Of a stretch of 64,000 nucleotides of DNA, positions 2,950 through 49,300 are shown one piece after another. The position numbers and the translations under genes are program-made. Source of the stretch: Anaeramoeba ignava BMAN (Eukaryota; Protista; Anaeramoebae); the NCBI GenBank assembly GCA_028826165.1, contig JAPDFW010000071.1, forward strand, positions 124,001-188,000, in the 5' to 3' direction. The notes under the pieces were generated by a model. The model saw nothing but the letters and a program-made list of their open reading frames with translations, was not told the origin of the DNA and did not search any database. The number at the start of each line of letters is the position of its first letter. The first letter of the stretch is position 1.

Positions 2950-4435
2950 GATTTAAATATTTGATTTAAATATTAATTTAAATATTTGATTTAAATATTT
3001 AATTTAAATATTTTGGATTTAAATATTTGATTTAAATAATTGATTTAAATATTTGATTTAAATATTTGATTTAAATATTTGATTTAAATATTTGATTTAA
3101 ATTTATTTAATTTAAATATTTTGATTTAAATATATTGATTTAAAAATTTAATTTAAATAATTTGATTTAAAATATTTGATTTAAATATTTTGATTTAAAT
3201 ATTTGATTTAAATATTTGATTTAAATATTTGATTTAAATAATTGATTTAAATAAATTGATTTAAATATTTGATTTAAATATTTGATTTAAATAATTGATT
3301 TTAAAATATTTGATTTAAATATTGATTTAAATATTTGATTTAAATATTTGGATTTAAATATTTTGATTTTAAATATTTTGATTTAAATATTTGATTTAAT
3401 TATTAGATTTAAAATTGATTTAAATATTTGATTTAAATAATTGATTTAAATATTTGATTTAAAATATTTGATTTAAATAAATTGATTTAAATAATTGATT
3501 TAAAATATTTGGATTTAAATAATTGATTTAAATATTTGATTTAAATATTTGATTTAAAATATTTTGATTTAAATATTTGATTTAAATATTTGATTTTAAA
3601 TAATTGATTTAAATAGATAGTGATTTAAATATTTGATTTAAATATTTGATTTAAATATTTGATTTAAAAATAAATTGATTTAAATATTTGATTTAAATAT
3701 TTGATTTTAAATATTTGATTTAAATAATTGATTTAAATATTTGATTTAAATTTAAAAATATTTAAATTTAAATATTTGATTTTAAATATTTTGATTTAAA
3801 TATTTGATTTAAATATTTGATTTAAATATTGATTTAAATATTTTGATTTAAATATTTGATTTAAATAATTGATTTAAATATTTGATTTAAATATTTAATT
3901 TAAATATTTGATTTAAATATTTTTGATTTAAATATTTTTGATTTAAATATTGATTTAAATATTTGATTTAAATATTTGATTTAAATAATTGATTTAAATA
4001 TTTGATTTAAATATTTGATTTAAATATTTGATTTAAATAATTGATTTAAATAATTAATTTAAATATTTGATTTAAATATTTGATTTAAATATTTGATTTA
4101 AATAATTGATTTAAATATATTTGATTTTTTAATTTAAATTTGATTTAAATATTTTTGATTTAAATATTTGATTTAAATAATTGATTTAAATATTTGATTT
4201 GAATAATTGATTTAAATATTAGATTTAAATATTTAATTTAAATATTAGATTTAAATAATTGATTTAAATATTTGATTTAAATATTTGATTTAAATATTTG
4301 ATTTAAATATTTGATTTAAATAATTGATTTAAATATTTGATTTAAATATTTATGATTTAAATATTAGATTTAAATATTTGATTTAAATATTTGATTTAAA
4401 TAATTGATTTAAATAATTAATTTAAATAATTGATT
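2950..4435. repeat. Intergenic AT-rich minisatellite, ~13-bp unit (TTTGATTTAAATA)n
   Basis: Directly visible degenerate tandem array of about 1.5 kb. Confidence 0.95.
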
Positions 4436-6471: not shown

Positions 6472-9400
6472 TTAAATCTTCTTCAAACAACTCTCAAAAT
6501 ACTTATAAGCTTCAACACAATTCTTATTGTAAATCTCAGGAGGAAAATACTCTTGAATATCTTCAGAAAGAGCTTCCTCTTCCTTAATCTGAACAAAAAT
6601 TATCAAAGCTTGTTTCAAGCTTTTATCTGGCAAAATATTATTATCATCAATCTCTTTAATAAATTCATACCAAAATTTAAGCAAATGAGTCGACTTGAAT
6701 TTCGCACAACAATTCTCAATTTCCTTCTTTTGAACAGTGTTTAATCCACTTTTGAATTTTTCTGGAGCTTTATCAATAGGACTTAATGATAACTCCTTTA
6801 TTTTGTTCTTCAAAAAATCAATATGTTTCAATTTAGGATATATTTTGAAATGCGGACATTCCACAAAAACATCTTCAAATTGACTATTCTTCAAAACTCC
6901 ATTCAAAAAATCATAAATAGTCATTTCAAATATCATTTCTTTCTCGGTTTCTAAACTTTCTTTTTGCAAAGAAGCTGAAACATGATCAATTAGAATAGAC
7001 ACCATTTGAACACGTAATTTTTCTTCTAATTCTTCTTGAACTACCTTCCATTCCCTTTCAATCATCTCTTCTTGATGTATTTCAGCACGTTTCTCAACTT
7101 CTTCCATATCAGAATAAATAAAAGAAGGGATTTTTTCACTTAATTTTCCCACAGAAAACTTCAAGTCTAAAATAATCAATCTCGAAAATCTTTCAATCAA
7201 AATCAATGATCCTCTGTTAATAATTTGTTGATTCAAAAATTCTTCAAATTTTCTTTCATCAATTCCAAAAATGGGTATTTTCTCAATCCTTTCAAACGGG
7301 ATTGGCAATGAAATTTGATATTCTTTCAAATCAGATCCCAAATACTCTTCATTCCCGAAATTCTGTTTGTAAATATCCTCAATTTCGCTCAGTAATTTAT
7401 TGTTCAAAAAAATTGCATTTTCAACTTGAATTTTCACAAACAAATTTTCCTTCTCATTTCCAGGTAAACAATAACATATTTTTTTCTGTTCATCCAATTC
7501 AAATTTCTCCATCTCTTCAGATAAAAAGTTCTTTTGGATTAGCCATCGTGAATACTCCCAGTTTAAGTTCCAGAATTTCTGGAAATCGTTATAAACATCT
7601 TCCAAATTTTCTTTTTTAAATGTTTCTTTGTTTTCTCTGATAAAATCACCCAAGATCATTGATTTCGACTCTTCTTGACTAATTTTGCCGTTGAATTTTT
7701 GGATTAGCACACTTTCAAAAAGCAAAAACCTGCGGAACAAACGAAGAATCTTCAACTCATTCAGGTTTTTCATAATAAAATGTGTAAACGCAATTGTTTT
7801 TTGTGTCTGCATTTCTTGGAGTGAAAATATAAGGTTTGTCAACTTGAATATTCCTTTACTTTCGAAATGAAGAAACATCCAGTTTCTCTCTCGTAAATGC
7901 TTTTTGCAGATTCTGAGTAGATCTTGGTTTGTTACTGTAGAATTACGTATTTCATAAACCCATTTATCTTTTTTTTCTTTGATACAACTTGATATTTGAT
8001 TTTCAAATGAGTCGCGAATTTCTCTTTTTGCAAAATTGGCAAAAATGCTAAAATCGATCGAGAAGGAGTTATTTTTGTATCTCTTTTGGATCACTGATAC
8101 AACTCGATGGAAAAACAAGATCGCAAATTCAAAAGGAAGATCAAGCAATCGAGACAAAACCTTCAAATCCTTCTGGACATGTCTTAATAAAAACAAAAGC
8201 AGCTGGTCTTTTGAATTCATTTGGAAAAACATATTGTTTATATTCATATTGAATTTTTTGGTAAAATGTGTGCTTTGTGTGAAATGGATCATGAATGAAT
8301 GAATAAATAATCGAAGAAATCGAAATTCAATAGGATGTAAATTTCTCACTGTGAACATTGGATTGGTATTCGGGAATTCATGTGTGGAATACGAAATCGG
8401 ATATTCAATCAATTCCCTTTTTTTTGATTCATTAACAAAATTTGATTCGCAATAATGGCATTTTGAAGAATCTTCTTTGATTTGATTGTATGACAAATGG
8501 TTGTTTTCACAAATGCGCCATTGACTATTTTCGATTAGTTCCTTGGCGTTGTATATCTCAGAGGCTCCTGGCCAATAAATATTGAACACTTTTTCATTAC
8601 TTCTTGTTTTGCTCTCAGAAAGACATTCCGAAATTGTGAAAAATGGTTCAATTTTATGTTCTGTCTCAAAAATAACTGATGATGAATGCAAAACCATTTC
8701 ATAGATATCGATGTCTTTCACTGATTCTTTAATTGCCCGATATTCATTTACTGATTGATCGAAATATTCTGAATAGTTATCCTGGAGCTTTTCGGGAATC
8801 CCATCAATTAAATCATGTTCCCGATAATATTTGAACAATTCGCAATTATTTATGAATTTTTTCAATAATGGATTTTCTTTTGTCATTCTTTTGAATTTTT
8901 TGATTGCTGGGATTCTTAATAAATGGTTTTTCTTGATAATTTTCTTGATGTCTTTGAGTCCCTTTTTTTTGTAGGCATCTTCGAAAATGTAAGAAATCCA
9001 TGGATTTATATTTTTTTGGTTAATATCCCAATATTCATAAATTTGTGTAGGTTTTTGTTTGATTTCTTTTCTTTTTTCTGCAATTTGGATAATTTTTTGA
9101 ATTGTAATTGGAAGGTTTATTTGAAAGTTTTTTTCTTTTTCTAAATTATTTTCTTCTAATTTTTCTGTTTGAATAGGTTTATACTGAGACTCTTTTTGTA
9201 ATTTCTGATTATCCTTATTATCATTATCATTTTTTGATTTGTTTGTATTTTTATGTTTATGTTTTCTTTTTGGTTTTTCATCATCACTATCATTTTCATC
9301 ATTTTCATCATTATAATCATTATCATCATTATCATCATTTTCATCATTTTCATCATTATCTTTTTTTGATTTATTTTTATGTTTATGTTTATGTTTATGT

Positions 9401-12400
9401 TTATGTTTTCTTTTTGGTTTTTCATTTTCATTTTCATCATTATCATCATTTTCATTTTCATCATTATCTTTATTTGATTTATGTTTCTTTTTATGTTTTC
9501 TTTTTGGTTTTTCATTTTCATTTTCGTCATTTTCATCATTTTCATCATTTTCATCATTTTCATCATTTTCATCATTTTCATCATTATCATCATTTTCATC
9601 ATTTTCATCATTATCATCATTATATCTATTTATTTGATTTATTTTTATGTTTATGTTTCTTTTTATGTTTTCTTTTTGGTTTTTCATTTTCATTTTCATC
9701 ATTTTCATTATTTTCATCATTATCATCATTTTCATCATTATCATCATTTTCATCATTATCATCATTATCTTTTTTTGATTTATTTGATTTATTTTTATGT
9801 TTATGTTTCTTTTTATGTTTTCTTTTTGGTTTTTCATTTTCATTTTCATCATTTTCATCATTTTCATCATTATCATCATTATCATCATTTTCATCATTTT
9901 CATCATTATCATCATTATCATCATTATCATCATTTTCATCATTTTCATCGTTTTCATCATTATCTTTTTTTGATTTATGTTTGTGTCTATGTTTATGTTT
10001 ATGGTTTCTTTTTGATTTTTCATTTTCATCATTTTCATCATTTTCATCATTATCATCATTTTCATCGTTTTCATCATTTTCATTATCATCATTTTCATCA
10101 TTATCATCATTATCATCATTATTTGATTTATTTGATTTATGTTTCTTTTTATGTTTTCTTTTTGGTTTTTCATTTTCATTTTCATCATTTTCATCATTTT
10201 CATCATTTTCATCATTTTCATCATTATCATCATTATCATCATTATCATCATTTTCATCATTATCATCATTATCATCATTATCATCATTATCATATTCTCT
10301 TTATTTGATTTATTTGATTTATTTGATTTATTTGATTTATGTTTCTTTTTATGTTTTCTTTTTGGTTTATTATTATTATTATTATTTTCATCATTATTAT
10401 TTTCATTATTATCATCATTTTCATCATTTTCATCATTATCATCATTATCATCATTATTTGATTTATTTGATTTATGTTTTCTTTTTGGTTTTTCATTTTC
10501 ATTTTCATCATTATCATCATTTCTCATCATTATCATCATTATCATCATTATCATCATTATCATCATTCTCTTTATTTGTTTTATTTGATTTATTTGATTT
10601 ATTTGATTTATTTGATTTATTTGATTTATTTGATTTATGTTTCTTTTTATGTTTTCTTTTTGATTTATTATTATTATTATTTTCATCATTATTATTTTCA
10701 TTATTATCATCATTTTCATCATTTTCATCATTATCATCATTATCATCATTATTTGATTTATTTGATTTATGTTTCTTTTTATGTTTTTTTTGATTTATTT
10801 TCTTCATTTTTGATTTATTTGATTTATTTGATTTATGTTTCTTTTTATGTTTTCTTTTTGGTTTTTCATTTTCATTTTCATCATTTTCATCATTATCATC
10901 ATTATCATCATTATCATCATTATCATCATTATCATCATTATTTGATTTATTTGATTTATGTTTCTTTTTATGTTTTCTTTTTGGTTTATTATTATTATTA
11001 TCATTTTCATTATTATCATCATTATCATCATTTTCATCATTTGATTTATTTGATTTATTTGATTTATTTGATTTATTTGATTTATTTGATTTATTTGATT
11101 TATGTTTCTTTTTATGTTTTCTTTTTGGTTTATTATTATTATTATTATCATTTTCATCATTTTCATCATTTTCATATTCAAAAATTCCTTTCACACTCTT
11201 TAATTTTTCAATAAAAATTGGATTCTCTTCAAAAAACTTCAAACAGTATAAAGATATCCAATTCTTAGAATGATTATGAACAGAATCAATAGTTGAATCG
11301 CTTAAAAATTTATCTAATGATTTCACTAAACCTTTCAAAAAATTATCATCTTTTCCAACCAAAAACAAATTTTTTATAAATGAATTTAACAAGGGATGAT
11401 TGATATTATTCTCATTTGATTCTAAATTCAACAGAATCCTTTCTTCTTCCTTTTCAGTTATTAAATTTAGAAAATCAATAGCATTTTCAATAAAATCACA
11501 ATCTTTCTCTTTACTTAAAATAAATTTCCTTAAATTTGTTCTTTCAGCCACAATCTCTCCAATTTTTGGTAAAAAATAATATCGATAAAGCAATAATTTT
11601 CCGGAATTCCTCTTCATAAATCCTGGTTTTGTCATCTTTGAAAATAGACACAAAATGAGAACGAAGATTCACATATCTCCCACAAATTTTACAAGTTGCT
11701 GAATCTGAATTGAATTTCTTAATGTCTCTGATTTCTCCCTCTGAAATTATTCTGTTTTTAAACCTCGTTCGCCTCTTTTTGGAAGATTTTTGCTTCTTGT
11801 TATTAGGACAATAAAACATTTCAATTGGTGAGCAAAATATTTGCTTAAACTTCTCAAAATTCCCAAAATACTTGGTAGATTTATCTTTAAAAGGCTCCCA
11901 GATTTTCTCTTTGAATTCGTCCCAAAGTGGCATGATCTTTGTTCTTATAAACGAAATGCTTCCTTGGAATTCAACAATTTCTTTTGAAATTTTAAAATCA
12001 GAAATACCAAATTCAATATAAAGCGAAAGTAAATGGTATTCAATCAAAATTTGATGCCATTTGTTGATCCAATTCCTTCTTTTTTTAGTGCTATTATTTT
12101 CCTCAAGACAAGCGCGAAGAAAGGTTGGAAAGTTGGATGATAAGTGTTGAATCATCTGAGTAACTTGAACTTGTGTTTTCGAGGAATATTTCTTTTCTAA
12201 TTTCCCGAGAATTACCCCAAAGCACGCATCAAGAAAATTCAAAATGGAAAATTCGCTCTTTTTGAATGCATCTTTTGAACTTGGAAACAAAGTCACCATT
12301 TTATTCCATGTTGTTGTTATTGCTTGCACAATTTCTTCCACTGAATCGAAGTAGTTTTTGTGAATCTCAACCACAGAAAGACTTGCAAATTCTTGATGTG

Positions 12401-15400
12401 AAAAGAGCTCAATCAAGTTTTGGATGTTGATTTTCACATCTAAAACAATATTGTATTCTTCTGGGGAAAGTGCAAAACGAATAAAATCAGCAAAATAGCT
12501 TCTTGCTAAATTAGATTTGTTTTTATCAAGTTCAGTTAGTTTTTGAGCCACAATTTCTTTCAGAATCTTATCATCATCTGGAATCTCATTTTGTTGGACA
12601 TAATTGTAAATTAAATGAGAAAATGGAAATTCCGCATTTTCAAAATCATCCTTAACAATAACAGGATAACAAGGCAAATTAGCATTATAAGCAATTTTTT
12701 CCCAAATTCCCCGAATAGCATCATCTTTTGATACAAAAAGAGTTAAATTTCTATTGCGATTAATGTTATTCAAGAAAATCGCAAAAATCTCTATTAATTT
12801 ATCTATGAAGGTTTTGTAAAGTGTTGATGAAAATGTTTGCAACTCATCCTTTTTATTTTGTTTTTTTTCCACAATCCGATATAAATCCCATTGATAAAGC
12901 TCGATATTTTGAGCGCCATCTTTTGCCATTTGGTTAATTGATGAAATGATCAACTGATAAAAATGCTCATTATTAATCAAATCAAGTATTTTTTCGAGAA
13001 TTGATTTGAATTTCTCTGTTGTCGGATGAATTAATTTCGAAAGAGAAAATCCTGCAATTTCTCGAAGCAACAAAGCAAACTCTTTATTTCCCGAAATTTT
13101 TTTGATCAATGTCTCCATAGAAACGTTCTTATGCAACGCAGCGTCTTTGATATCAAACGAAATTTTGGGAGATAAATCTTCCACATAATAATACTCCCAA
13201 TTTTCCTCAAAACAATATGAGAATCTTGACTGGTGTGTGTAAGGAGAAAGGTGAACAATAAATGAAACATAAAATGTTTGGCTTTTGAAATGGTAGTTTT
13301 TCTTTTCTCTCTCAGTGTTAAATTCCTCTGAGGTTTTGAGATTCTGATTCCTTTTTTGGAGATGATTATAAATTAGAACCTCAACAAGATATTTTGATTG
13401 GTAAAAAATCTCCATTGGAAGCTCGCTTGGATTGAAATGAATCATGAGAATTTTCGTTGTTTCATTATCATTATCATTATCTTTATCTTTATCTTTATCT
13501 TTATCTTTATCTTGTGAATTAAACCATTGATATATTCTTCTCTCAAGTAATTTATCAGTTTCAAAATCCACAATTCGAACAGAATCAATTTTTGTTTTTT
13601 CTGGCTGTTTAATTAATTGGTAATTTGGCGAGTGAGTGAAAATTATTGAGTTGTGAATTTTCTTTTTTTGCAGTTCTTTTGTGAATAATTCCTCAAAACT
13701 ATTTGAATACTGAGTAAAATAATTCGAGCATATTTGCTTCAAAAATCTAAATGAAAAATCAAGATTTTCATTTAGTGTTTCCAATATTTTGCTTAATTGA
13801 AGCATCATATCAATTTTGCAAAGTCTGATCCAAAAAGAAGTGCCTAAATCAATAATTTTGGAAATATCTGAATCCTGTTCTTCATTTTTCTTGTTTTCGT
13901 TTTGTTTCTGGTTTTTGTTCTTCTGTTTTTGATCTATTTTGACAATATTGATGATTTTTATTGCAAGAGCAGGAAAAAGATCGCTGTGGTAATTGAGAAT
14001 CAAGTTATGCCGATTTATTTTATTTGAGGTCACTCTTTCAATATCATCTAAAACACTTTGATTGGCTTTCAAAAAATTCATGTTGTGGTTTTTGATGAAA
14101 TGCTCAGGAATAACAAATTGTTTTTCAAATCGGTTCAAAACAGCAGGTGATTCAATTCGATAAGCTCTGTTTTTATCAGTGATCACAATAATCCGGAATT
14201 TTGGGTTGATTTGCACATGATTTGATGTGTCTCCAAATGATATTCTTGTGAAAAGTTTGTTTTCAATTTGTATGTAATTCTGGTTCAAAAGATCATAAAG
14301 TGGCTCAAAAAGTTGTTGATTATTGCATAAAATGACTGTTTCTCCTAACGAAACAGAGAGTTCAATTTTCTTCAAATTTTGAATGATTCTTAATGTTTCT
14401 TGATCTTCAGAAAATGATGATCCAAACAAAACAACAGCTTTGGCTTTGATTTGGTTCAAAATCACAGGGAAAAGTGCCAAGTTATCAACAAGAAGCATTA
14501 AATGACGTGAAAATTTATGCACTTGATCTTTGGAAAGTTCGAATTTTTCTTGTTTTTCTGGAGGAAGTAATCTTCCCTTTAAATTTTGATTGATTAATGA
14601 CATGATTTGCGGTTCTGGTGTTGGAATTGATATCCCCAAAATGTCCCTGATTTGAGGTAGTAATTCTTTAAGGAAATCGGGTTTTGATCCAAAATTTCGA
14701 TATATTGAATTCCATATCACTTGAGAATCCCAAACTGGTTTCTGGAAATGTATTGATTTGGAAATCATTTTGAGTAGATAATAAAAATCTCTTAATCCAT
14801 AGTAATTTGTATTTGTTCTTCTATTGGATTGTGCTCCTCTTGGTAAATCTTCGTTAGAATTTGAGTTTTCCTGATTTCTTTGTTTTTTTGTGATTAAATC
14901 ATAAACACGCGCTAATTTTTTTGCTAGTTCTGTTGAAGGATTTGAGTGAAGAGATTCAAAAATTGATTCTGCTGTTTGTTGTAATTGGTCAGTATCTGGA
15001 TCTGGACGACGCAATAAAATTCCTCTATTTGTATTTGCTGGATCAAGTTTCCAATTTGATATTGCAAGAACAGAAATTGTAGGTTTTTTTCTCTTCTTTT
15101 TTTTGATTTGATTTTCATTTTCATTATTATTTTCATCACTTTCATCACTTTCATTTCCACTTTCATTACTTTCATTACTTTCATCACTTTCATCACTTTC
15201 ACTTTCATCGTTTTCATTTAAAAATTGATATAAATGTCTTTGATCTGCTTCTTCTAATTCAGAATGCAATATTTTTAATGGTAAATCTGGACTTAAATCT
15301 GCCAAAGCAACCTCATCTAAAACAACTACTGAAATTAAATCTTCTTTATTAAAATTTTTAGCATGATTTTTTGCTAAATCAAAAGCATGTTGGATTCTAG

Positions 15401-18400
15401 CTGATGTAATAACTGGTGAACATTGGATATAAAAAGTTTTTAAAGCTGGTAAATCCCAATTTTTTAAAAATGGATTACTGTTTTTGGGATATCTAAGAAG
15501 AAAAGTAAGTAACTCGATTGAAAGAGATTTTGAAGATCCTTGTTTTTATTATTATTGTTTTTGTTCAAAATTTAAATTTGAATTAATAAATTATTTAAAT
15601 TTTGAAATTATTGAAATTTACCTGGCTTTCCAACAATAAATAACGGAATTTGAACATAGCAAGTAAGAAATATCATCAATAAATTCTCTTTTAATGCATT
15701 ATTCAAAGCAACTTCATGATTCAAATCATGAATTTTCAAAGAATTAACAAAATTGGTTTGAGTTCTTTCAATAAATTTTTGGATTGATAACAATTTCTTG
15801 CTTTTTTGAATATCCCTCATTTTATTATTAACTCCTTCCAAAAATTCAGTTCGAGATTTATCAGCATAACGAGCTGCATAACAAGCAAATAAAGCCAAAT
15901 AAAGAGAGTAATAAATTTGGGGATCATTATCAGAACTGATTAGCAATTTCCCAGCTTTTTTCTCTAACAACCATTTCAAAATTCTTAATGTTCTTGCTGT
16001 ATCTCTTAAAGAAACAGAACTTTGAGGATCATCTGAATTTGATCGAACAAAATCATGTGAATAGCAAATCAACTCCTTAATTTTATCTTTGAATTCTTCA
16101 AGATCATTCCTATTTTGCTGGCTATTTTCGAAAATTTCTTCAAATGCTCGATCTACCATATTCGAAATATATCTTCTTTCTGTTGGACTCTGTAAGTTTC
16201 CAAAATCATAAATATCCTCAAAAAAAGAATCAGGAATTGCATGCACACGATAAACAGAGCGACGAATCTTTCTCATATTTTCTTGCTGTTTGCCAAACTT
16301 ATAAGCAAATCCGGCATCAGTAAGTAAATCTGGATCATCTTCATTCGAATCTTTATTACGATTATTATTATTATTGTTGGATTGGTTTACTCGATATTGG
16401 CCACGAATACGATATGGATTTGCAGCAACAAGAATATTGATTTTTTTACTTATAGGAAAACCATCCATTGATCTGTCTACTAAAATCTCCTTTAACAAAA
16501 CAATGCAATTATTCGGTGCTGTATTATACTCATCGAAGAAAACATTCACTTTACAAAATGAATGCTTTTGAGAATTTTTGTTCTTGGCTGCTTTCTCTTT
16601 AAGTCTCTTCACCTTTTGATTCGCCTTTTGTATTATTGATCTAATATGATTCATTGTTGTTCCTCCATGAACATCTAGAATTAATAATTTTTGTCTCATT
16701 ACTTTTTTCAATAAAAACTTGATCAACGAAGTTTTTCCACATCCAGTTTCTCCAAATAAACTGACAGGAATTCCCGCAAATAATTTGTATTGGAAATAAA
16801 CCATTTTCAAGAAGTTGTCTGATGTTAAAACATATCTTTTTTGATCGTGATAAAACTCATCCAGTTCATCAACCGAAATTGGAACCGTATTCAAAGCTGA
16901 TAAAATTTGGAAAGCAGTTTTGAGATTGATTGCTTTTTCCAGATCAGCGCTTCTATCATTGTTTGCGAATAAATCATAGAAATTGAATTTGTTATTTTCA
17001 AGTGTTTGATGAAGACCTGGATTGAATAATTTTCTCATTGCAACCTGATCTTGTCCAATTAAATTGATTCCGTTGATTTCTTGGTTGTGTTTGGCATATT
17101 GATTTTCAATGAAAAGCACAAGAAGGCAAAGACCTCTTGAATCCCATGGTGTTGCTGTTTGTAAAAGAGATGATAGATCTTCCAGTTCGATTTGTTCTGA
17201 ATTTTTTGACTCAGTAGTCCAGTTTATTGATCGAGAAATCATGTTGACAACTGAATATAAATATGCCTTGAAAAAATCCTTGAGAAATTGTTTTGCTAAT
17301 TGAATGCTCCCAAATGTGGTTTCAGCTACTTTCATATCAAGAAGAAAATACTGAGATAATCCATTTATATGGCTTTTCATTACTTTCCAAAAATTTGATA
17401 GCAATCTGAAAGTAACAGGAGAATTTGGATTTTTATTCTCATCAGTTAAAATTTTGACAGAAAAATCATAGAAGGTCTTTGGATTTGTTTCGGAAGTGAG
17501 AAAAATAAAACGTTGTTCAATTGAAATTTGGTTAAATTCTTTGAAATCGGATTGTCCAATTTCAAGAAATTTAGAAACTTTTTGAAGATCAGTATCAACT
17601 CTTTTATCAATTTTAAATGGATTTTTGATCCTGTATTCTTCAAATGTGAAAACTTCTTTATTCGCATCAAATTGATTTTCTTCAAGATATTTCAAAGGTG
17701 GGAAATTAATAAGTCCGTTGCATGAATTCATGACTCTTGAACTGGGAATTTCCAGATAAATTCTTGTTGTTTTTTTCATATGCCAAATTAAATGATTATT
17801 ATAAGAAATTGATCTTCTTCCTTCTATTGAACCCCACATAAGAAATTCCCAAAGAAAATCACTTGTTTTTCTTTTGGAAATAAACGGCAATTCAATATGG
17901 AGAAATTGTAAAGAATAATCATTATAAAACAATTTATTTTCAAATAATTTTTGTGTTTTAGTGATAATTTCTGAAACTGTTCCTTTTGAAAGTGGAAGGT
18001 ATTGATAATTAAAAGTAGCGTTAGTTGTATTTAATTCATAACATTTTTTGCGAATCTGAAATGTTTTCCCACCTCCAGAAAAGTGAGAAGTATAAACTTG
18101 AATATAATTGTAATAACGGAATTTCTGTAAAAAAATGTTATTAATTTCCATTCTAGAAAGTGATTCAATTTGCTTCTCTATTTTTCCTTGTTGAAAAGCC
18201 TTGAGCATATTGTTGACTTCAAATGAATCACCGGAACACAATAAAAGAAGTGGATATTTTGTTGGATAGTCAATTTTCTGTGGATTGTTTTGATCAAAAC
18301 ATTGCTATTAGCTTTGTTCAAATCATCAGAAAATAAAACAGTAAAAAGAAATTTTGGGAAATATTCATCTTGTTGGTTCTCATTTGAATTGATATTTTCC

Positions 18401-21400
18401 AATTTGAAATTTGAAATTTCATTACTTGTGTTGTAAAAACGATAAATTCTAAAGAAATTCTGAATATCACTTTTGGTTGTTTTTGGATTGCAAATCAAAA
18501 CATTTTCTCTCAATGGGAAATGTTTGGAATAAATGAAATATAATGAGGTTGTGATATCATAAGTTTGTGCACTGTTTACAAGTTTTGTGATGTATATAAG
18601 TGGATCTGCAAGAGTGCCTTTTCTTTTATTGAATTGTTCATTGTATTTCAACTCAATTTTACTTATATTTTCGTTTCCTACTGGGAAAACTGGAATTATT
18701 CTTTCTTTGATTGAACGAGAAATTTTGAGTAATTCTTTTGACATTTTTAGAAGAAAATCAGCAATACGCAAATCTCTTTTGTTCACAAAATTACTGAAAG
18801 AAGTAATCAAAGGAGTGATTTGAGGTTTTTGATTGATGGATCAAATAAATTAAATATAGAAATGAGCAAGTCAGCATCTTTTGAATGAGCAAAATGATAA
18901 AATATTGTGTAAAATTGTTCTCGTGAAAAGATAGATACCAAAGGCGCCTTTTTATAACACTCTTTAAATTGTTTTTTCCAATAATCTAGATCTTGTTGGT
19001 ACTTTTGCTTTTGTTTTTTGAAAGTGTTTTCCCACTCCATGTCGGGACTCACCTTAATAACTTCCTCAAAGTTTTCTTGATCGTAAATAAAATGTTTTTC
19101 GAGCTTCAATTTTTCAAGTAATTTTGAAATATCCTCAATAATTGGGAAAACAGATTGGAAAGTTTCCATATTTTGTAAAAATTTTTGGTTGTTTTCATCT
19201 TCTTTTTGTCTAGCATTTATGTTTAAAATTTCTGTTTTTTCAATCTTGTTATAGTCTTGGAAAATATAAAACATGTCATAAAAATTATTGATATAAAGTT
19301 TTTTGTCTTCAAACTCAAATTCCAAGCAATGAAAAGAATCTTTATGAGTGAAAAAAGCAAATCTAGCTGTTCCATTTTTAGAAAACATCAAATTAAGTCT
19401 TTTTTTGGCTTTCATTTGTGGTGAATCTTCTTCATATTTAATAGCCTCAATAAATTCATTGAAAATTCGATGTAAAAATTTGAAATCAAAATCCAATCCT
19501 TTGTTTAATTCTTGGAAATTTTCTTCTGATTTCTTAATTTGTTCAACAAGTTCTCCAAGATCTTTCCATTCTTTTTCTGCATATAAATAATCTTTAACTC
19601 TTTCCCTTAAAGAGGATAATAAAGTTGCTGCTTTTGCAATTTTTCTATCATTAAATCGGTCAGGATCAACTTTTTCATAAAATTCTTTTTCATCTTTTTG
19701 TTCTTTTAACCATTTAATAACATCATCATTTAAAAGATCTTTTTCATTATTTTCATTTGAATTTTCATTTGAATTTTCATTATTTTCATTATTTTCATTA
19801 TTTTCATTATTTTCATTATTTTCATTTGAATTTTCATTATTTTCATTATTTTCATCGTCTTTAATTTCAATTTCATTTGAATCTTCATCGTCTTCAATTT
19901 CAATTTCATTTGAATCTTCATCTTTGTTATTTTCATCTTTTTTATTTTCATCTTTTTTATTATTTTCATTATTTTCATTATTTTCATCTTTTTTATTTTC
20001 ATCTTCTTTTTTATTTTCATCATAATTTCGATTTGAATGTAATTGTCCAGGAATCAAATCCCCTACAAAATTTAATATCTCATTTGTCAAAAATCCTGCT
20101 TGAAGTTCAGTTTTCATAATTTCATTTACTTTTTTCAAAGTTGGTTTTTCTTGATGATCTTTAATAAGAAAAGTGGGTTTTGTTATAAATTTAAATAATG
20201 AACATAATTTTTCAAGAGAACCAGTAGATCTTTTGTTTTTACGAATTTGATGGAAATTGAAAATTTTATCCTCATTTATAGTAACTTCATTGGTATTTGG
20301 GAAAAAATTAGTTGCTAATGCCTTGGCTTCATATCTTATTTTTTCATCTTCTTGATTAAAAGGAAAAAGTTTTTCCAATTCATCAAAAGTAATAGATTCG
20401 TTATGTAATTTTTGTTGTAATTTTTTCCATTCATCCTTGATTGATTTATTGATCAAATGCTTTTGTAAATCTTCAACAGAAATTGGAACTTTATTTCGAG
20501 ATTTCCAAAATTTTTTTGTTTCTTTTTTCCAAATTCCCAAAAAAATATTACTTTGGAATAAATTACGAATAATTTGTAAATCCTCGAAATTAAAAGGTAA
20601 CACACTAAAAAATGTTTCTATTTCTGAAACATTCCGACTTTGATTTTCTATTGAATTTTCCATTTTCTTTTCTTCCTTGATTTTTGCTAATACATCTTGA
20701 ATTGGTTTAGTATCAAATTTTTGTGAATCACGAAGAAATAAATCATGAAATTCTCGTAGATTTAATTCTTTTTTGTTTAAATCGACCATTAAATTGTATG
20801 ATTCATAGAAATTAAATTTGGGGTAAAATATCTCTAAAAATTTGTTATAATATGTATAGAAAACAAGATAATCTTCAAATTCATTGATTGCACAATCTTT
20901 GGGATTTGTCAGTTTTTTGACTTTATCTTGAATTTCGTTTTTCCAATTTGAAAGTGATTTAAAGAGTGATTTAATTGAAAATTGAAATTGATTTTGAAAT
21001 TGAAATTGGAACTGAAACTGAGTTTGAGTTTGAGTTTGATTTTGATTTTGATCTTGATTTTGATTTAATTCTTGAATTTGAATTTGATTTAAATCTTGAT
21101 TTGGAAATAATTTTTCAAACTCGCGAAACCATTGAAGAGCATAAACATAATTTTGTTGTTGAAATTCTGTTAAAAATTTAATAATGTTGAAAAAGATGAA
21201 TTTCGAATAATCTCAATATCAAATAAAAAATAGGGAATCCAAAATTCAAGTTGATATTCTAAAGGAACAATAGATATCAAAGAATTTTCAAAAGGAAAAC
21301 TACGAGGGTCAATCAATTTCAAAACGTGCATTGTAAAATTATGAATAATTTCTTTAATAACATTGCTATTTGTTTTCAAAGGAAATATGTTTTGTGATAT

Positions 21401-22807
21401 TAAAATTTGTTTTTTTGCGTTTTGATCCAAGTCAATATATTCATGTGTTGTAAAACTTGTGTTGATATATTGATCTACTGTTGATTTAAAAATATGTGCA
21501 AAATTGGGTGATCTCTCTGAATATTTGCATGGAATTTTCATGTTTTTAAGATCATTTTTTTTGTAAATATTAATTTGTTCTAATGCTATATTCCAAAAAT
21601 TAATCCAATCAGAAAGTTTTGCAAATTTAGTAGTAGTAATGAATCCGAATATAATGCCTGGACTAATAAAATGAATAAACTCAATAAATAAACCATTATC
21701 AAATGAATATTCAAGTAATATTTGTCTGTTATTTGAGTTATTGTTAAAGAAAGCATGAAAGCAACTATAATCAAATTGGAAAGACAATTTTTTTGAATCG
21801 AAAACTATTTGAATCATTTTGCAAAATTCTTCCACATATTCATTAGTTTTTTCTCGATTGTTTTGAGGTTGTTTGATTGGGAAAACATTTTTGCTATAAA
21901 TTTGGAAAAGTGGAAGATATTTAATGAATTTAAATTGGTCACTAACTGTATCCAAAGTTGCTGATAAAGTGGAAAAAATAAGTGAAATTTCTTCTTTTTT
22001 CAGTAAGAAAAACACTTCATCAACACTTTCAAGAAAATCTGGAAATTTTTGAGAATCAATGTTTCCTGATAAAGCAGAAATTAAAAGGTTTTTATCTGGA
22101 ATAAATTGGCAAAATCTAATGAATAATATTCTTAATATATCTGGGAAGTTTTCTTGTGAAACAGTTTGAATATCATATTTTTGAAAGAAAGTGCCAACAA
22201 CTTCCTTTTTGGGAGCCATTTTTGAAATTTCTTCAATTCCTTGAGAAATAAAATCTATTGCACTCGGAATATCTGGAAAAAATGAAATAACTTTTGCTAT
22301 AAAGGTAGATAATAAAATTGAAGCAATATTGATTTTTTTTGTAGGTGTGAACTCTTTTGGTAATGATTTTTTTTTTGAAAAATTAAAAATATGGAAGAAA
22401 ACTTGATTTTCAAATGTTGGATTAAATGAGAATTGATTTTCTTTAAAAATTTCTTCTTTCATATTTTTTTTATATTTTTCCATTTTTTTCTTATGATTTT
22501 GTTGTTGCTCTTTATCTTTTGTTGTTGTAATTTTTGGGTATTGTTGGTTTTGTAACAGATTGTATTGTTTTGTTTGAAATTCTAATTTTTCTGTTTTCTC
22601 TTTGATTTAAAAAAAGTTCAAATTTTACAAAATAAGTATTTTTGTCTTCTAAAGGTTGTGACATTGGTTTGCTGTTAAAATAAACAATGAATTTTTGATC
22701 TCCAAATGTTTGTGTAATATCTTCTGGATTTAAATATAAATAAAAATAAATTTGTGATTTTTCTGAATTTAGAAAAGTTTGTGTTTTAGTTTTTTTGCTG
22801 AACTCAT
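6472..22807 (-). CDS. Giant RNF213/mysterin-like dynein-related AAA+ ATPase / E3-module protein, split by frameshifts and one intron
   Basis: Walker A GETGCGKT, Walker B VFFDEYN and AANPYR. Second module LFIVGKPG|SSKSLS (intron 15539-15621), SVVVLDEVALADLSPDLPLKILH, ISNWKLDPANTNRG, YYGLRDFYYLLK. These parallel RNF213 motifs as I recall them (VVVLDEVGLAEDSP..PLK.LH, ISNW.LDPAKMNRG, FFGLRDYYSL.K). Also FRIIVITDK...P..LNRFEKQ and a C-terminal RZ-like region. ORFs 21170-22483, 18807-20789, 18178-18810, 15608-18241, 11544-15305, 10517-11653 and 6472-~9620 join by 1-nt shifts. The 5' end (ATG at 22807) is less certain. Confidence 0.88.
9215..11175 (-). repeat. Coding tandem repeat: acidic D/E/N blocks alternating with KPKRKHKKKHKSNKSNK blocks
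   Basis: (TCATTTTCA/TCATTATCA)n and (TTTGATTTA)n arrays. The D/E/N frame is continuous with flanking coding sequence at both ends. Confidence 0.85.
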
Positions 22808-22895: not shown

Positions 22896-25877
22896 TTATT
22901 GTTTATTTAATTCTCCATATTTTTTTTGCCAATCAATATATTCTTGAGGAGGATATTGAAATTTTTTAATTTTAACAAGATCTTCTTTTTCTAATTTTTT
23001 AAAATCTTTACGTTTTTGGAAATTTATGAAATTATTTCCAATTTCCCAATAACAAAATTCTAATAAAAACTCAGAATTATAAGTTTTAGCAATTTGAAGA
23101 GTTGGAATTAACATTTCATGAGATAAAGTTTGAGATAGATTGACTTCACACAGTTGTTTTAGTCTATCCATTTGAAAATAATCACTCAAAATGAATAAAT
23201 CCAGAATGATTTTATTTGAATTGCAAATGAAAGTTGTGTTTTTTTCAATAATAGCAAGTTCAACACTTGGAGGAAAGAATCTGTTTGAATAAATATATTC
23301 CAAAATCATCAATAATGATTCAAATTTTATATCTTTAAATATAATTTCTTTGTTGATATTTTCTTGCATTTGATGTTGAGATAGAGATTGAAAATATTTA
23401 CTTCTTTGTGACAATATTGCTAAATGAACTTTGATTATTTGGTTTTTGATTTTCTTTTTTATTTTGATTTTTTTGATTTGATTCTGTAGAAATTATTGAG
23501 AAATCAGAGAAAGAACCAGAATGTATTAATTTTTCTAGTGAATTTGCAATTATATCAATTTCTGTTTGAAGAATATCTTGAATAATATTTTTATTATCTT
23601 GAATATTTTCTTGAATATTTTCTTGAAGAATATTTTTATTTTCTTGAATATTTTCTTGAATAATATTTTTATTTTCTTGATTTTTTTCTTCAACATTCCC
23701 ATTCTTCTTAATAATAAGCTTCATTATTAAATTTAATGATTTCATCTTAAATAAGTCACTAATTGATAATATTTGTTTAACTAAATTTATATCTTCAAAA
23801 ATATTTTCATCTATTTCCCCACAATAAATATATTTTATTAAAATATAAAATGGAAGAAATGGATATTCAACAAATATTTTGATTTTGTTCTCATCAATTA
23901 TATATTTAGATTGTGATTTTTCTTGTTTTTCTTGTTTTTCTTGTTTTTCAATTTTCAAACAAAATTTCTGACAAAATTCATTAAAATCTTGTGATTTTGT
24001 TTCAAATTTATCAATTAATTCTTTGAATATCAAATTTCTTGAGTAAAGAATAATTCTATGAAGAAATAAAGATTGTTTTTCATTTTTTTGATTATCAATT
24101 ATAATTAACTCAACATCTGAAAATTGTTGATTATTAAGTAATTTAAATAAATCTTCTTGGTAAGTATTTGGAATAATTGAGAGTTTTGGTTTTGGGATTT
24201 GGTTTAGGAAGTTTGGGTTTGTTTGGAATTGATTTTTGTTTTGATTTGAATAATTTTTTGAAGAATTTTTTCTTTGTTTTTTTTTCTTTTTCCTCTAATT
24301 TTCCAGTTTTAATAAAATAATCACGACAAACAATTGCAAAACATTCATCAATATTTATACGAGTTTTGCAAGAAATTTCAATAAAGAAAAGACCGTTTTG
24401 ATTAGCAAAATCTTTTAATTCCATTTCTGTTAATTGTCTTTCTTGAATTAAATCTATTTTATTTGCAGCAAGAATTATTGGAATTGAATCAAGATCATCA
24501 ATATTTTTATATCTTTTGATTTTTTCAAGATATAAAGGAACTTGTTCAAGATCTCTAAAATTTGTAATTGAAACTGTAATTACAAAAATATCTCCATTTC
24601 TATAATATTCATTTTCAAAATGAATAAAATCATCGTCAAAATTTTGAATATAAGTAACTTCAAAAATATCAGAAATTGGTTCAATATAAATTTGTTTTCT
24701 TATTGAATCTTCATGTAAAAAAGCATCCGTAGCACTTTGATTTAAATTTATTTTTAATTATAATTAGAATTAGATTTAGAATTAGAATTAGAATTATAAT
24801 TAGAATTAGAAGTATATTTAGAATTAGAATTAGATTTAGAATTAGAATTATAAATAGAATTATAATTATAATTAGAATTAGAATTAGAATTAAAATTAAA
24901 ATTAGAATTAAAATTAGATTTAGAATTAGATTTAGAATTATATTTAGATTTAGAATTATAATTAGAATTATTAGAATTAGAATTAGATTTGGGAATTAGA
25001 ATTAGATTTAGATTTGGAATTAGAATAAATTATATTTAGAATTTAGATTTTAGAATTGAATTAGAATTAGATTTAGAATTAGAATTAGAATTATAATTAT
25101 ATTTAGATTTAGAATTATAATTAGAATTATAATTAGAATTAAATTAGAATAGAATTGAATTAGAATTTGATTTTAAATTTAAATTCAGAAGAAATTCAGA
25201 ATTTAGATTTGAATTTAGAATTAGATTTAGAATTAGAATTAAATTAGATTTAGAATTGAATTATAAATATAATTATTTAGAATTGTGAATTATATATTTA
25301 GATTTTAGAATTATAATTATAATTAATTAGATTTAGAATTAGAAATTGTAAATTTAAATTAGATTTTAGAATTTATATAATTGAATTTAAAATAGGAATT
25401 AGAATTAGATTTAGAATTAGATTTATAATTAGAATTATATTTAGAATTAGATTTAGAATTAGATTTAGATTTAGAATTATATAATTAGATTTAGATTTAG
25501 AATTAGATTTTAGAATTAGAATTTAGAAATTAGAATTAGATTTTAGAATTAGATTTAGAATTAGATTTAGAATTATAATTAGATTTAGATTTAGAATTAT
25601 AATTAGATTTAGATTTAGAATTAGATTTAGAATTATATTTATAATTAGAATTAGAATTATATTTAGATTTAGAATTATAATTATAATTATATTTAGATTT
25701 AGAATTATAATTAGAATTAGAATTAGATTTAGAATTAGATTTAGAATTAGAATTATATTTTAATTTCAAAATTTACTCATCAACAAAATGGTTTTGACAA
25801 TATTGAATAATAAGTGTTTTTCTTCCAGAAAAACTAGGACCACAAACACATATTTTTGGAGTTCTAAAATTATCCAT
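22896..25877 (-). CDS. Ras-like (degenerate) GTPase fused to two BTB domains
   Basis: Exon 1 (25877-25777) reads MDNFRTPKICVCGPSFSGRKTLIIQYCQNHFVD. After intron 24735-25776 it reads EDSIRKQI...PIILAANKIDL...FIEISCKTRINIDECF. BTB1: FSDVELII..LHRIILYSR..YIYCG. BTB2: FSDFSII..VHLAILSQRSKYF..LEYIYS..SDYFQMDRLKQLCE. Two 1-nt frameshifts (~24180, ~23440). Confidence 0.88.
24735..25776 (-). repeat. Intron filled with (TTAGAA/TTAGAT)n microsatellite
   Basis: GT..AG boundaries restore the Ras reading frame, and the hexamer array is visible. Confidence 0.9.
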
Positions 25878-46300: not shown

Positions 46301-49300
46301 ATTTATAATTTGTTTATAATTTTGTTTATAATTTTATTTATAATTTTATTTATTATTTTGTTTTTATAATTTTGTTTATAATTTTGTTTATAATTTTAAT
46401 ATAATTTTATTTATAAATTTTGTTTATAAATTAATTTATAAATTTATTTATAAATTTATTTATAATTTTATTTATAATTTTATTTATAAATTTATTTATA
46501 AATTTATTTATAATTTTGTTTATAATTTTATTTATAATTTTGTTTATAATTTTATTTTATAATTTTATTTATAAATTTATTTATAATTTTGTTTATAATT
46601 TTTATTTATAATTTTGTTTATAATTTTATTTATAATTTTATTTATAATTTTGTTTTATAATTTTATTTATAATTTTATTTATAAATTTGTTTTTATAATT
46701 TAATTTATAATTTTATTTATAATTTTGTTTTTATAATTTTAATTTATAATTTAATTTATAATTTAGTTTATAATTTAATTTTAATTTTATTTATAATTTT
46801 ATTTATAAATTTTATTTATAATTTTATTTATAATTTTATTTATAATTTTATTTATAATTTTGTTTATAATTTTATTTTTATAATTTTATTTATAATTTTG
46901 TTTATAATTTTATTTATAATTTTTATTTATAATTTTATTTATAATTTTTATTTATAATTTTATTTATAATTTTTATTTATAAATTTATTTTATAATTTTG
47001 TTTATAATTTTATTTATAATTTTGTTTATAATTTTGTTTATAATTTTGTTTATAAATTTGTTTTATAATTTTGTTTATAATTTTGTTTATAATTTTGTTT
47101 TATAATTTTATTTATAATTTTAATTTATATTTTTATTTTATAATTTAATTTATAATTTTATTTATAATTTAATTTTATAATTTAATTTATAATTTTATTT
47201 ATAATTTATTTTATAATTTATTTTTATAAATTTTATTTATAATTTAATTTATATTTTTATTTATAATTTTATTTATAATTTTATTTATAATTTTATTTAT
47301 AATTTTATTTATAATTTTATTTATAATTTAATTTATAATTTTATTTATAATTTTATTTATAATTTTATTTATAATTTTATTTTATAATTTTATTTATAAT
47401 TTTATTTATAATTTTATTTATAATTTTATTTTATAATTTTATTTATAATTTTTATTTATAATTTTATTTATAATTTTTTTTAATTTTTAATTTATAATTT
47501 TATTTATAATTTTGTTTATAATTTCATTTATAATTTTATTTTTATAATTTTTATTTATAATTTTATTTATAATTTTTGTTTATAATTTTTATTTATAATT
47601 TTGTTTTATAATTTTGTTTATAATTTTTATTTATAATTTTATTTATAAATTTATTTATAATTTAATTTTGTTTATAATTTTATTTATAAATTTATTTATT
47701 TATAATTTTTATTTATAATTTTATTTATAATTTTATTTTATAATTTTATTTATAATTTTATTTATAATTTTGTTTTATAATTTTATTTATAATTTTATTT
47801 ATAATTTTGTTTATATTTTATTTATAATTTTATTTTATAATTTTATTTATAATTTTATTTATAATTTTATTTATAATTTTATTTTATAATTTTATTTTAT
47901 AATTTTATTTATAAATTTATTTATAATTTTGTTTTATAATTTTATTTATAATTTTATTTATAATTTTGTTTTATAATTTTGTTTATAATTTTGTTTATAA
48001 TTTTGTTTTTATAATTTTGTTTATAATTTTGTTTATAATTTTATTTATAATTTAATTTATATTTTTATTTATAATTTTAATTTATAATTTTATTTATAAT
48101 TTAATTTATAATTTAATTTATAATTTTATTTATAATTTATTTATAATTTTATTTATAAATTTTATTTTATAATTTAATTTATATTTTTATTTATAATTTT
48201 ATTTATAAATTTTATTTATAATTTTTATTTATAATTTTATTTATAATTTTATTTATAATTTTATTTATAATTTTATTTATAATTTTATTTATAATTTAAT
48301 TTATAATTTTATTTATAATTTTATTTATAATTTTATTTATAATTTTATTTATAATTTTATTTATAATTTTATTTATAAATTTATTTATAAATTTATTTAT
48401 AATTTTATTTATAATTTTGTTTATAATTTTATTTATAAAATTGTTTTAATTTATAATTTTTGTTTATAATTTTATTTATAAATTTATTTATAATTTTATT
48501 TATAAATTTATTTATAATTTTATTTATAATTTAATTTATAATTTTATTTATAATTTTATTTATAATTTAATTTATAATTTTGTTTTATAATTTTATTTAT
48601 AAATTAATTTATAATTTAATTTATAATTTATTTATAAATTTAATTTATAATTTTGTTTATAATTTTATTTATAATTTAATTTATAATTTTATTTATAATT
48701 TAATTTATAAATTTGTTTATAAATTTATTTATAATTTATTTATAATTTTATTTATAATTTGATTATAAATTTATTTATAAATTAATTTATAATTTTGTTT
48801 ATAAATTTATTTATTATTTAATTTATAATTTTGTTTATAATTTTGTTTATATTTTTGTTTATATTTTTGTTTATAAATTTATTTATAATTTTATTTATAA
48901 TTTTATTTATAAATTTATTTATGAATTGATAGATCTTACCAACATGATCTTCTCTATCTAATCTCCAAATAACTACAGCACCATTATTTACTGAAGAAGC
49001 AATAAAATTTTGGAAAGCTAAATAAATAAAATTTTTGGAATTAAAAAAAAAAATATTTTTATTACAAAAGAAATTGAATGAATTAAGAAATTTTTTTTAT
49101 ATTATAATATATATATTTATTTACATTTATGTGTATGCCATTCTATACTTGAAATATGTAAATTGTTCCTCATACTAAATTTATATGTTAATTTATTATT
49201 TTTATTTTCAATAATTGAAACCGTTTCATTTCCTGCAACTGCAATTAAATTTTCTTCTAAATTTGTTGTTAATCCAATTAATGAACCTGTTCTTTGAGAT

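Follow-up and report, generated by a model that had tools for sequence, protein, structure and literature searches.

A single gene of ~5,300 codons lies on the minus strand between positions 6472 and 22483 of the window, the 64,000-nucleotide stretch of Anaeramoeba ignava DNA analysed here. Judged from its sequence, it is probably a transcribed, full-length member of the RNF213 family whose product would be a scaffold, sensor or coat subunit driven by ATP and not a transthiolating ligase. RNF213 (mysterin) is a human Moyamoya susceptibility gene coding for an immune protein, a ligase that ubiquitylates bacterial LPS, and is, to our knowledge, known almost solely from vertebrates. A. ignava is an anaerobic metamonad protist with sulfate-reducing symbionts, and the complete RNF213 architecture is present in it. 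Further full-length relatives are a Copromyxa transcript (Amoebozoa) and P0015 (4,779 aa, GCA_037189345.1), from which it follows that the family predates animals.

Gene structure and transcription

An earlier, sequence-only reading had joined seven ORFs (pieces A to G) into one gene of ~16 kb, and this was confirmed by colinearity with paralogs and by contigs of public reads. Open reading frames of 660 to 1,253 codons, as listed here, are far beyond chance in DNA of ~78% A+T. Pieces B, C, D, a small exon, E and G follow in the same order in a paralog on contig C70, within one frame that stays open over 4,182 codons. The homolog of piece A (22% identity) belongs to the closest paralog, on contig C93, where a 1,955-codon frame holds it together with the AAA core, and piece F is colinear with paralogs on C126, C58 and C93, in which it comes after the AAA core and before the finger. 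By this piecewise comparison the order of all seven pieces agrees with the paralogs; several independent genes were looked for, and colinearity and read contigs both gave one. Within the span of 6472-22807 proposed earlier there is indeed a single gene, with its stop codon at 6472-6474, and translation probably begins with the ATG at 22483 (minus strand), not at 22807. Similarity searches were run piece by piece, the only spliced translation being a 56-residue check of an intron junction.

Read contigs of two public runs, X1 and X3, contain one extra nucleotide after position 18825 and two fewer near 18279-18283. With this addition and removal ORFs B, C and D fall in one frame exactly, and the B/C and C/D breaks are small assembly indels. 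The ORF breaks had been taken for frameshifts, which holds for these two, while at least one other is an intron. This spliceosomal intron (15539..15621, minus strand; 83 nt, GT..AG, phase 1, ~92% A+T) splits the Walker A motif of AAA4. Run X3 has a 1,550-nt contig that skips it, the DNA run X1 retains it, and splicing it out yields ...IVGKPGSSKSLS... in the junction translation. The kind of run X3 is unrecorded, and it was taken to be RNA-derived because its contig is spliced; its contigs also cover piece B. Among the runs recorded as RNA, none contains the stretch of the gene. From the spliced contig of X3, one run of unrecorded kind, we infer that the gene is transcribed.

Read confirmation extends to the B/C and C/D joins and the intron and not to the joins A/B (at 21172-21212), E/F and F/G, so the product may be truncated. 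For the A/B join an intron with donor 21303 and acceptor 21167 is unlikely, the segment being coding-like in composition with no nearer GT. Public gene models at these loci are fragments (874, 1,168 and 2,641 residues), many of them named "hypothetical protein", and small indels in the assembly break the reading frames of these loci.

AAA core and N-terminal arm

The AAA core is divided over two pieces on the minus strand. Piece D (15622..18304) contains an AAA unit with the motif SGGGKT, then AAA3 and, as GKPG, one half of the Walker A of AAA4; piece E (11547..15538) completes AAA4, continues through the later AAA and hinge region and reaches the beginning of the E3 module, where a RING remnant lies. 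The Walker A-like SGGGKT (18062-18079, minus strand) belongs to the unit before AAA3, probably AAA2, and is invariant in six homologs. AAA3 and AAA4 are the catalytic units in mammalian RNF213, and in the alignment their Walker motifs match human RNF213 residue for residue: GETGCGKT (16730-16753) and VFFDEYN (16523-16543) in AAA3, and GKPG-SSKS (15620-15631 and 15525-15536, interrupted by the intron) and VVVLDEV (15309-15329, piece E) in AAA4, all on the minus strand. Piece E also carries, on the same strand, the motifs ISNWKLDPANTNRG (15021-15062) and YGLRDFY (14781-14801). All RNF213-type AAA motifs quoted in the sequence-only reading were recovered in the right order. Of a putative six-unit ring, the SGGGKT unit, AAA3 and AAA4 were located, and downstream of AAA4 a profile again gave RNF213.

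The earlier assignment to the RNF213/mysterin family was borne out by searches against the PDB, in which the AAA3/AAA4 core, the middle region and also the C-terminal module had RNF213 as their sole significant match; cryo-EM structures of the mammalian protein include 6TAX, 7OIK, 8S24 and 9G08. With phmmer, piece D matched RNF213 only (E 1.5e-40, human construct residues 2430-2813), as did piece E (E 2e-29; Walker B exon E 5.8e-11). A profile of the middle region after AAA4 (A3) matched RNF213 at E 6e-20, extending up to the RNF213 RING. In the six PDB sequence searches with significant matches, no dynein or midasin chain appeared at E<=1. Profile A2, made for the region before AAA3, had no PDB match, and the link of this region to RNF213 comes from the fold search: for the AlphaFold2 model of piece D residues 1-480 (pLDDT 65), the best Foldseek match was RNF213 (E 4.9e-5, TM 0.47-0.49), with dynein chains lower (TM 0.2-0.3). 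A best match to midasin/Rea1 or dynein was thus sought by sequence and by fold, and RNF213 was obtained both times. The only Pfam domain reported for piece D was AAA_5, which is dynein-related and generic. The protein would still bind and hydrolyse ATP and keep the RNF213 architecture.

Ahead of piece D come pieces A (21173..22483; the N-terminus, 437 codons counted from its first ATG), B (18810..21212; the N-arm region, with an Asn/Glu/Asp-rich low-complexity insert) and C (18181..18810), all on the minus strand. In the C70 frame, residues 189-749 are the colinear counterpart of piece B and residues 837-947 that of piece C, which is in frame with B and D after the two indel corrections. No recognisable domain, CBM20 included, was found in the N-terminal arm. 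Piece A gave no Pfam or PDB match, direct phmmer searches of pieces A and B against the PDB gave no match, and an Atlas feature search of piece A returned weak helical-repeat look-alikes, all below 0.9.

RING remnant, RZ-type finger and C-terminal module

The RING remnant at the end of piece E consists of FYC (11799-11816) and CKIC...H (11655-11693), both on the minus strand. In the alignment, one Cys, one CxxC and one His are left of the C3HC4 pattern, and the central C-x-H-x2-C-x2-C is absent, as it is in C70 and P0003. The remnant recurs in the two other A. ignava copies compared, C70 and P0003, and in Copromyxa P0020, whereas P0015 has a complete C3HC4 RING. In mammalian RNF213 the RING is dispensable for activity (PMC12075652).

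The E3-module segment after the remnant is the structured part of piece F (11196..11668, minus strand), whose frame is one base off that of piece E. The E/F break sits at an A5 run, and read-through parallels 'LFFENFGRLLIEQ' in C70, which suggests that the reading continues across the run. It is followed by a low-complexity linker of ~2.1 kb (9117..11195, minus strand) with Asn/Asp/Glu runs and KPKRKHKSNKS units, ~1.7 kb longer than its counterpart in paralog C58. Its tandem repeats have periods of 9, 6, 12 and 18, its GC content is 14-22%, and its acidic or basic reading is open given frame switches near 10520, 10300 and 9629. This tract was also considered as an intron, which is unlikely with repeat periods that are multiples of three and a GC content well above the ~8% of the proven intron.

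The variant RZ-type finger, CENNH-x12-C-HY-C (8449..8511, minus strand), could be aligned with canonical RZ fingers. In mouse RNF213 the zinc ligands are Cys4451, His4455, Cys4471 and Cys4474, with Cys4462 as catalytic residue and His4483 as general base (PMC12075652). The comparison covered 26 aligned C-terminal modules, six canonical and 20 from the clade of the window gene. The zinc ligands C, H, C and C are kept in 26/26 copies, the window gene included, while the catalytic Cys and base His are present in 6/6 canonical copies against 0/20 in the clade. Pfam PF20173 (ZnF_RZ-type) did not match the window gene at E<=1, and canonical copies pass it with 66 bits (the C70 paralog) and 60 bits. 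Ser stands at the catalytic column in 13/20 of the dyad-less copies; the window gene has a gap there with Ser residues nearby. The finger-loop alignment is short and gapped. A mouse C4462S mutant retains autoubiquitination activity (PMC12075652), and a serine nucleophile or another cysteine may take the ligase role.

The E3 shell and C-terminal domain, the counterpart of the E2-docking CTD, occupy 6475..8448 (minus strand). A direct phmmer search of the C-terminal piece against the PDB gave no match and profiles were required. Profile A1 of the C-terminal module matched RNF213 at E 1.9e-44 (human construct residues 4483-5235), and profile A4, built from copies of the dyad-less clade only, at E 7e-15 (residues 4612-5236). 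The E2-contact residues of mouse, F5093, W5097, D5101, Y5106 and E5108, are mostly replaced: positions 6589-6639 read NILPDKSLKQALIIFVQ, with K for W and Q for D. P0015, a canonical protist homolog, also lacks the E2-contact Trp, so that this contact may be peculiar to mammals. The E3-core-like C-terminus described earlier stands as an RNF213-type shell and CTD by these profiles, with the RING and the catalytic pair missing. The description as an E3 machine is supported in part only, as the central Cys/His cluster of the RING and the catalytic Cys/His pair are missing and PF20173 failed. The protein would be unable to take ubiquitin from an E2 in the manner of mammalian RNF213.

Paralogs, alternative explanations and possible role

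At least 48 RNF213-like loci were found in the 43-Mb genome of A. ignava, and nine A. ignava proteins (eight GenBank entries were checked by name) show 100% identity to loci of this assembly. In the tree, the dyad-less copies form one clade (SH-aLRT 99, and 98 with the finger removed), in which the pair is absent from 20/20 copies and which has so far been seen only in A. ignava; its members lack a complete RING as well but have a zinc-binding finger at the RZ position. The sister of this clade is a group of few copies from the same genome whose RZ finger is canonical. A long branch of 1.39 changes per site leads to the window copy and could reflect relaxed constraint, and several other paralogs contain in-frame stops. 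Canonical-RZ relatives are C70:179954-192499, C128, L043 and L044 in the same genome, and A. flamelloides 'rnf213-alpha' (KAJ6246387.1) and P0015 elsewhere. These are colinear with the window gene over the whole length at 22-40% identity, but keep CPNGH...C(G/T).P...C..CG..IGG..H including the catalytic pair and match Pfam ZnF_RZ-type. The family is undescribed in those parts of the literature on RNF213 in Dictyostelium, Anaeramoeba and other protists, and of the A. ignava genome paper and its supplements, that were available to us.

Mammalian RNF213 and the window gene agree in size (~5,000 residues), in module order (N-arm, AAA ring, E3 shell, finger, CTD), in the near-identical AAA3/AAA4 Walker motifs (GETGCGKT, GKPGSSKS, VVVLDEV), in the motifs ISNW.LDPA..NRG and (Y/F)GLRD(F/Y)Y and, by profile, in the C-terminal module. 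The window gene differs in its incomplete RING, in a finger that keeps the zinc ligands without the equivalents of mouse Cys4462 and His4483, in changed E2-contact residues, in an N-terminus where neither CBM20 nor another domain was found, in the low-complexity insert of ~2 kb before the finger and in being one of at least 48 loci, not a single gene. The other carrier of an RZ finger is ZNFX1, where it is fused to an NTPase (PMC12075652). The likeness ends with this zinc finger type at the ligase position and the NTPase fusion, since ZNFX1 is an SF1 helicase without AAA ring and its finger retains the Cys/His pair. With dynein heavy chain and midasin/Rea1 the gene has Pfam AAA_5 in common and would have a six-unit AAA ring in one polypeptide; these proteins give no significant sequence match and a weaker fold match, and they have neither E3 shell nor CTD.

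Most likely, the protein works on some surface in the cell as a scaffold, sensor or coat subunit that depends on ATP; its target could be a phagosome, a symbiosome, prey or a virus. Its dynein-like AAA core, in which the Walker A and B motifs of AAA3 and AAA4 are intact and an extra P-loop unit lies ahead, would act as motor, and the RNF213-type E3 shell/CTD and zinc finger are kept while the complete RING and the Cys/His pair are missing. Partnership with the few canonical-RZ paralogs may, as a conjecture, supply ligase activity. It is unlikely, though worth serious consideration, that the protein is itself still an active ubiquitin ligase, with E2 docked on the CTD and a finger-loop Ser or the Cys of a CLPG motif (7459-7479) as nucleophile. 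The recognisably RNF213-like shell and CTD, the zinc ligands strictly conserved in all 26 modules, the activity of mouse C4462S (PMC12075652), the Ser in 13 of 20 catalytic columns and the CLPG Cys, conserved in 85% of clade members, are consistent with such activity. It is opposed by the absence of the general-base His throughout the 20 clade members, the gap at the catalytic column of the window gene itself, the unmatched Pfam ZnF_RZ-type model and the unconserved mouse E2-contact residues, among them W5097, mutation of which abolishes activity.

The window sequence has five frame breaks, a long terminal branch and a 2-kb low-complexity tract that shifts reading phase three times, in a family where several other paralogs carry in-frame stops. 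These would fit a pseudogene with genuine frame breaks, one copy in decay within an expanded family. This is very unlikely given that independent read contigs show two of the breaks to be assembly indels, that frames stay open for 660 to 1,253 codons at 78% A+T, that Walker motifs and zinc ligands are intact and that a correctly spliced contig was found. Descent from dynein, midasin or another ring ATPase, with likeness to RNF213 in the P-loops only, can practically be dismissed. The generic AAA_5 as the only Pfam result and the dynein chains further down the fold-search list would suit it, but homology runs through the RNF213-specific E3 shell and CTD, RNF213 reached 1e-40 where the six PDB searches had no dynein or midasin at E<=1, and the TM scores were 0.47-0.49 for RNF213 against 0.2-0.3 for dynein.

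The dyad-less clade represents a natural separation-of-function experiment, in which the Cys/His site was shed and the zinc finger and ATPase motifs were strictly kept, and it bears on the role of the AAA core or scaffold without ligase chemistry. The RNF213 family can evidently expand, like immune receptor families, until a genome of 43 Mb carries dozens of its loci. A further, quite speculative and rather improbable proposal is a diversified surveillance system, comparable to the expansions of NLR or TRIM genes, in which the canonical-RZ paralogs would perform ubiquitin transfer and the large, fast-evolving ligase-dead clade with its divergent N-arms would provide ATP-gated recognition or coat subunits. 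At the membranes of phagosomes or symbiosomes these would distinguish between prey, invaders and the resident Desulfobacteraceae. If true, cell-autonomous immunity of the RNF213 type would go back to an early stage of eukaryote evolution. The earlier idea that the protein may sense ingested or symbiotic bacteria would agree with two facts, the symbionts of the host and the at least 48 loci of the family. Anaeramoeba ignava houses Desulfobacteraceae in symbiosomes (PMC11550330), which makes the family a concrete candidate for studying how a protist handles resident and ingested bacteria.

Structure and transcription of the gene

The RNF213-like gene sits in very A+T-rich DNA (22–30% GC), where seven large minus-strand ORFs, designated A to G from N- to C-terminus, occupy 6472–22483. 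The RNF213-type motifs listed in the sequence-only reading were all found on this strand and in the order it stated: GETGCGKT (16730–16753), VFFDEYN (16523–16543), the AAA4 Walker A in two parts, GKPG (15620–15631) and SSKS (15525–15536), VVVLDEV (15309–15329), ISNWKLDPANTNRG (15021–15062) and YGLRDFY (14781–14801). The proposal that the ORFs form one gene was borne out by paralog order, read contigs and splicing. From the ATG at 22483 to 6475 this gene measures 15,926 nt without its intron, or about 5,300 codons.

Among the paralogs recovered from the genome to which the window belongs, the one on contig C70 has an unbroken frame of 4,182 codons. Pieces B (C70-frame residues 189–749), C (837–947), D (960–1817), a small exon between D and E (1815–1894), E (1895–2988) and G (3269–3842) match this frame in that order. 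A weak homolog of piece A occurs in the closest paralog (contig C93), in the 1,955-codon frame that also encodes its AAA core. Homologs of piece F follow the AAA core and precede the finger in the paralogs on C126, C58 and C93.

Contigs from two public runs were compared with the window from 15200 to 21199. Those of both runs are 2 nt shorter near 18279–18283 (2 nt extra in the window assembly) and 1 nt longer after 18825 (1 nt absent from it), exactly the corrections that fuse ORFs B, C and D by frame arithmetic, and these two breaks are therefore window-assembly errors or strain differences. Repair of the frameshifts by reads thus succeeded for these two; another break proved to be an intron instead. 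A contig of 1,550 nt from run X3 omits 83 nt (15539–15621, about 92% A+T) with minus-strand GT..AG ends, a segment kept in DNA run X1, and its removal brings the two halves of the AAA4 Walker A together (...IVGKPGSSKS...). The library kind of X3, from a 2022 study that also included a second organism, is unrecorded; on the window the run behaves as RNA-derived, and the spliced contig indicates transcription of the gene. Within the intron, at 15542–15551, 12 nt and 6 nt of the short-read contigs are absent from the window. Two of the small assembly indels break the reading frame, and broken gene models elsewhere in the A. ignava genome may have the same cause.

Three further joins are putative. 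The A/B join (21172–21212) would require a frame change of +1 or −2, which must sit at or above 21190 since the T5 run at 21172–21176 is upheld by a short-read contig. The E/F break (about 11560–11575) is located at an A5 run, and translation through it parallels the C70 paralog. The F/G join lies inside about 2.1 kb of low-complexity sequence with repeat periods of 9, 6, 12 and 18, which exceeds the corresponding linker of the C58 paralog by some 1.7 kb; its acidic/basic reading (NDE runs, KPKRKHKSNKS) is open provided that there are frame switches near 10520, 10300 and 9629.

Relationship to RNF213

Database and structure searches were run throughout with individual ORF pieces. Sequence searches among all solved structures gave significant matches to RNF213 only. 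Piece D (AAA3 region) matched residues 2430–2813 of the human RNF213 construct (E 1.5e-40), piece E matched RNF213 with E 2e-29, and the exon with the AAA4 Walker B (E 5.8e-11) aligned SVVVLDEVALADLSPDLPLKILH of the window with human SVVVLDEVGLAEDSPKMPLKTLH. RNF213 was also found with profiles of the region after AAA4 (E 6e-20, extending up to its RING) and of the C-terminal region (E 1.9e-44), and with a C-terminal profile made only from A. ignava copies of the gene's own clade (E 7e-15). The region before AAA3 had no sequence match among solved structures; its AlphaFold2 model (pLDDT 65) had mouse RNF213 as best Foldseek match (E 4.9e-5, TM 0.47–0.49), with dynein far lower in the same search (TM 0.2–0.3). 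Midasin or dynein as the best relative was consequently rejected, RNF213 being top in both sequence and fold searches, and the RNF213-like identity first proposed was upheld. Some 440 residues ahead of the AAA3 Walker A, an SGGGKT P-loop at 18062–18079 probably forms the AAA2 nucleotide site. Six homologs show it without variation, among them the amoebozoan Copromyxa sequence P0020 and P0015 (GCA_037189345.1), a relative of 4,779 residues that has both a full RING and an RZ finger recognised by Pfam. No recognisable domain was found in N-terminal pieces A and B. The window gene has RNF213 architecture and intact ATPase motifs.

Finger, RING and clade history

The RZ domain of mouse RNF213 has zinc ligands Cys4451, His4455, Cys4471 and Cys4474, with Cys4462 as the nucleophile accepting ubiquitin and His4483 as general base; its RING is dispensable and the C-terminal domain serves E2 docking (PMC12075652). 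The window-gene finger (8449–8511, minus strand; C-ENN-H-LSYNQIKEDSSK-C-HY-C-ESNFVNESK) keeps the four zinc ligands but, unlike the mouse protein, has no equivalents of Cys4462 and His4483. Twenty-six C-terminal modules were aligned: 20 from the A. ignava genome with the window gene's kind of finger, window copy included, four from that genome with a canonical finger, P0015 and one A. flamelloides protein. The zinc ligands are conserved in all 26, the catalytic Cys and His in 6/6 canonical copies and 0/20 others. With Pfam ZnF_RZ-type, canonical copies reached 66 and 60 bits; the model did not match the window finger or three other clade members, even at E≤1. The RING is reduced to a remnant (one Cys, CxxC, one His), the same in both other Anaeramoeba copies looked at. 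Mouse E2-contact residues are mostly substituted in the window gene, which says little because P0015 likewise lacks the key Trp. The description as an E3 machine therefore held for the architecture and the zinc finger, but not for the catalytic pair and the RING, which are absent. One further locus, L043 (G000:C46:156652–160371), has two fingers in one frame: a canonical RZ finger and, roughly 440 residues upstream of it, a CKKKH...CPFC finger with the ligands only.

A maximum-likelihood tree from the C-terminal module placed all copies without the catalytic pair on one side of one branch (SH-aLRT 99; 98 with the finger deleted before alignment). With P0015 as root, the copies lacking the pair are sister to the canonical ones of A. 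ignava. A single loss of the pair followed by expansion is the simplest reading. Within a seven-member subclade, the window copy stands alone on a long branch.

Family size, proposed role and neighbourhood

The A. ignava genome, sequenced with Nanopore and Illumina, measures 42.8 Mb with a reported 80.65% A+T (PMC11550330). Counting paralogs, as the sequence-only reading had proposed, gave at least 48 RNF213-like loci from 82 matches of the AAA3 piece, and at least 34 with the finger region, both lower bounds. Near-identical pairs on different contigs (L022/L023, L028/L030, L018/L019, L031/L035 and L044/C128; branch lengths 0.001–0.06) reflect either very recent duplication or haplotypes left uncollapsed, an ambiguity that affects the copy count. 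Searched exhaustively with the C-terminal piece, a set of 1.84 billion representative proteins yielded only 18 relatives, most from A. ignava, some from A. flamelloides, one Copromyxa transcript and P0015. Loci of the genome that holds the window match nine A. ignava proteins at 100% identity. The public models for the RNF213-like loci are fragments of 299–2,641 residues, some named rnf213, the rest "hypothetical protein" or "finger protein"; homologs in A. ignava and A. flamelloides are already on record via automatic rnf213 labels on a few proteins. The literature searched yielded no description of this family, of its expansion or of a dyad-less clade within it, and the accessible parts of the A. 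ignava genome paper and supplements mention neither RNF213 nor ubiquitin (PMC11550330).

The window protein would bind and hydrolyse ATP, would not perform transthiolation as mammalian RNF213 does, and would serve as scaffold, sensor or coat subunit, possibly in partnership with canonical paralogs. Such a role has precedent, as the mammalian RNF213 coat requires the ATPase on all targets, whereas bacteria are the only targets on which it requires the RZ finger (PMC11549300). As the chief reservation about this reading, an alternative ubiquitin nucleophile in place of the catalytic Cys is possible, because mouse RNF213 C4462S retains autoubiquitination (PMC12075652) and Ser occupies the aligned catalytic column in 13 of the 20 clade members. 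Long open frames, intact motifs, the correction of frames by read contigs and the spliced contig make a pseudogene unlikely. A. ignava hosts Desulfobacteraceae symbionts inside symbiosomes (PMC11550330); for the scaffold, sensor or coat protein proposed here, a putative role toward bacteria or symbionts is a reasonable hypothesis from host biology and family size.

Directly upstream of the gene and on the same strand, two ORFs at 22896–24033 carry BTB and BACK domains; BTB proteins are typical cullin-3 adaptors. Elsewhere the window holds long satellite arrays composed almost purely of A+T: a 12-mer (TATAATTTTATT x270, 45638–48927, 3.3 kb), an 8-mer (TATTAAAA x243, 60113–62073) and two 6-mer arrays (55539–56269 and 58017–58528), because of which 2-kb windows fall to 1–2% GC.
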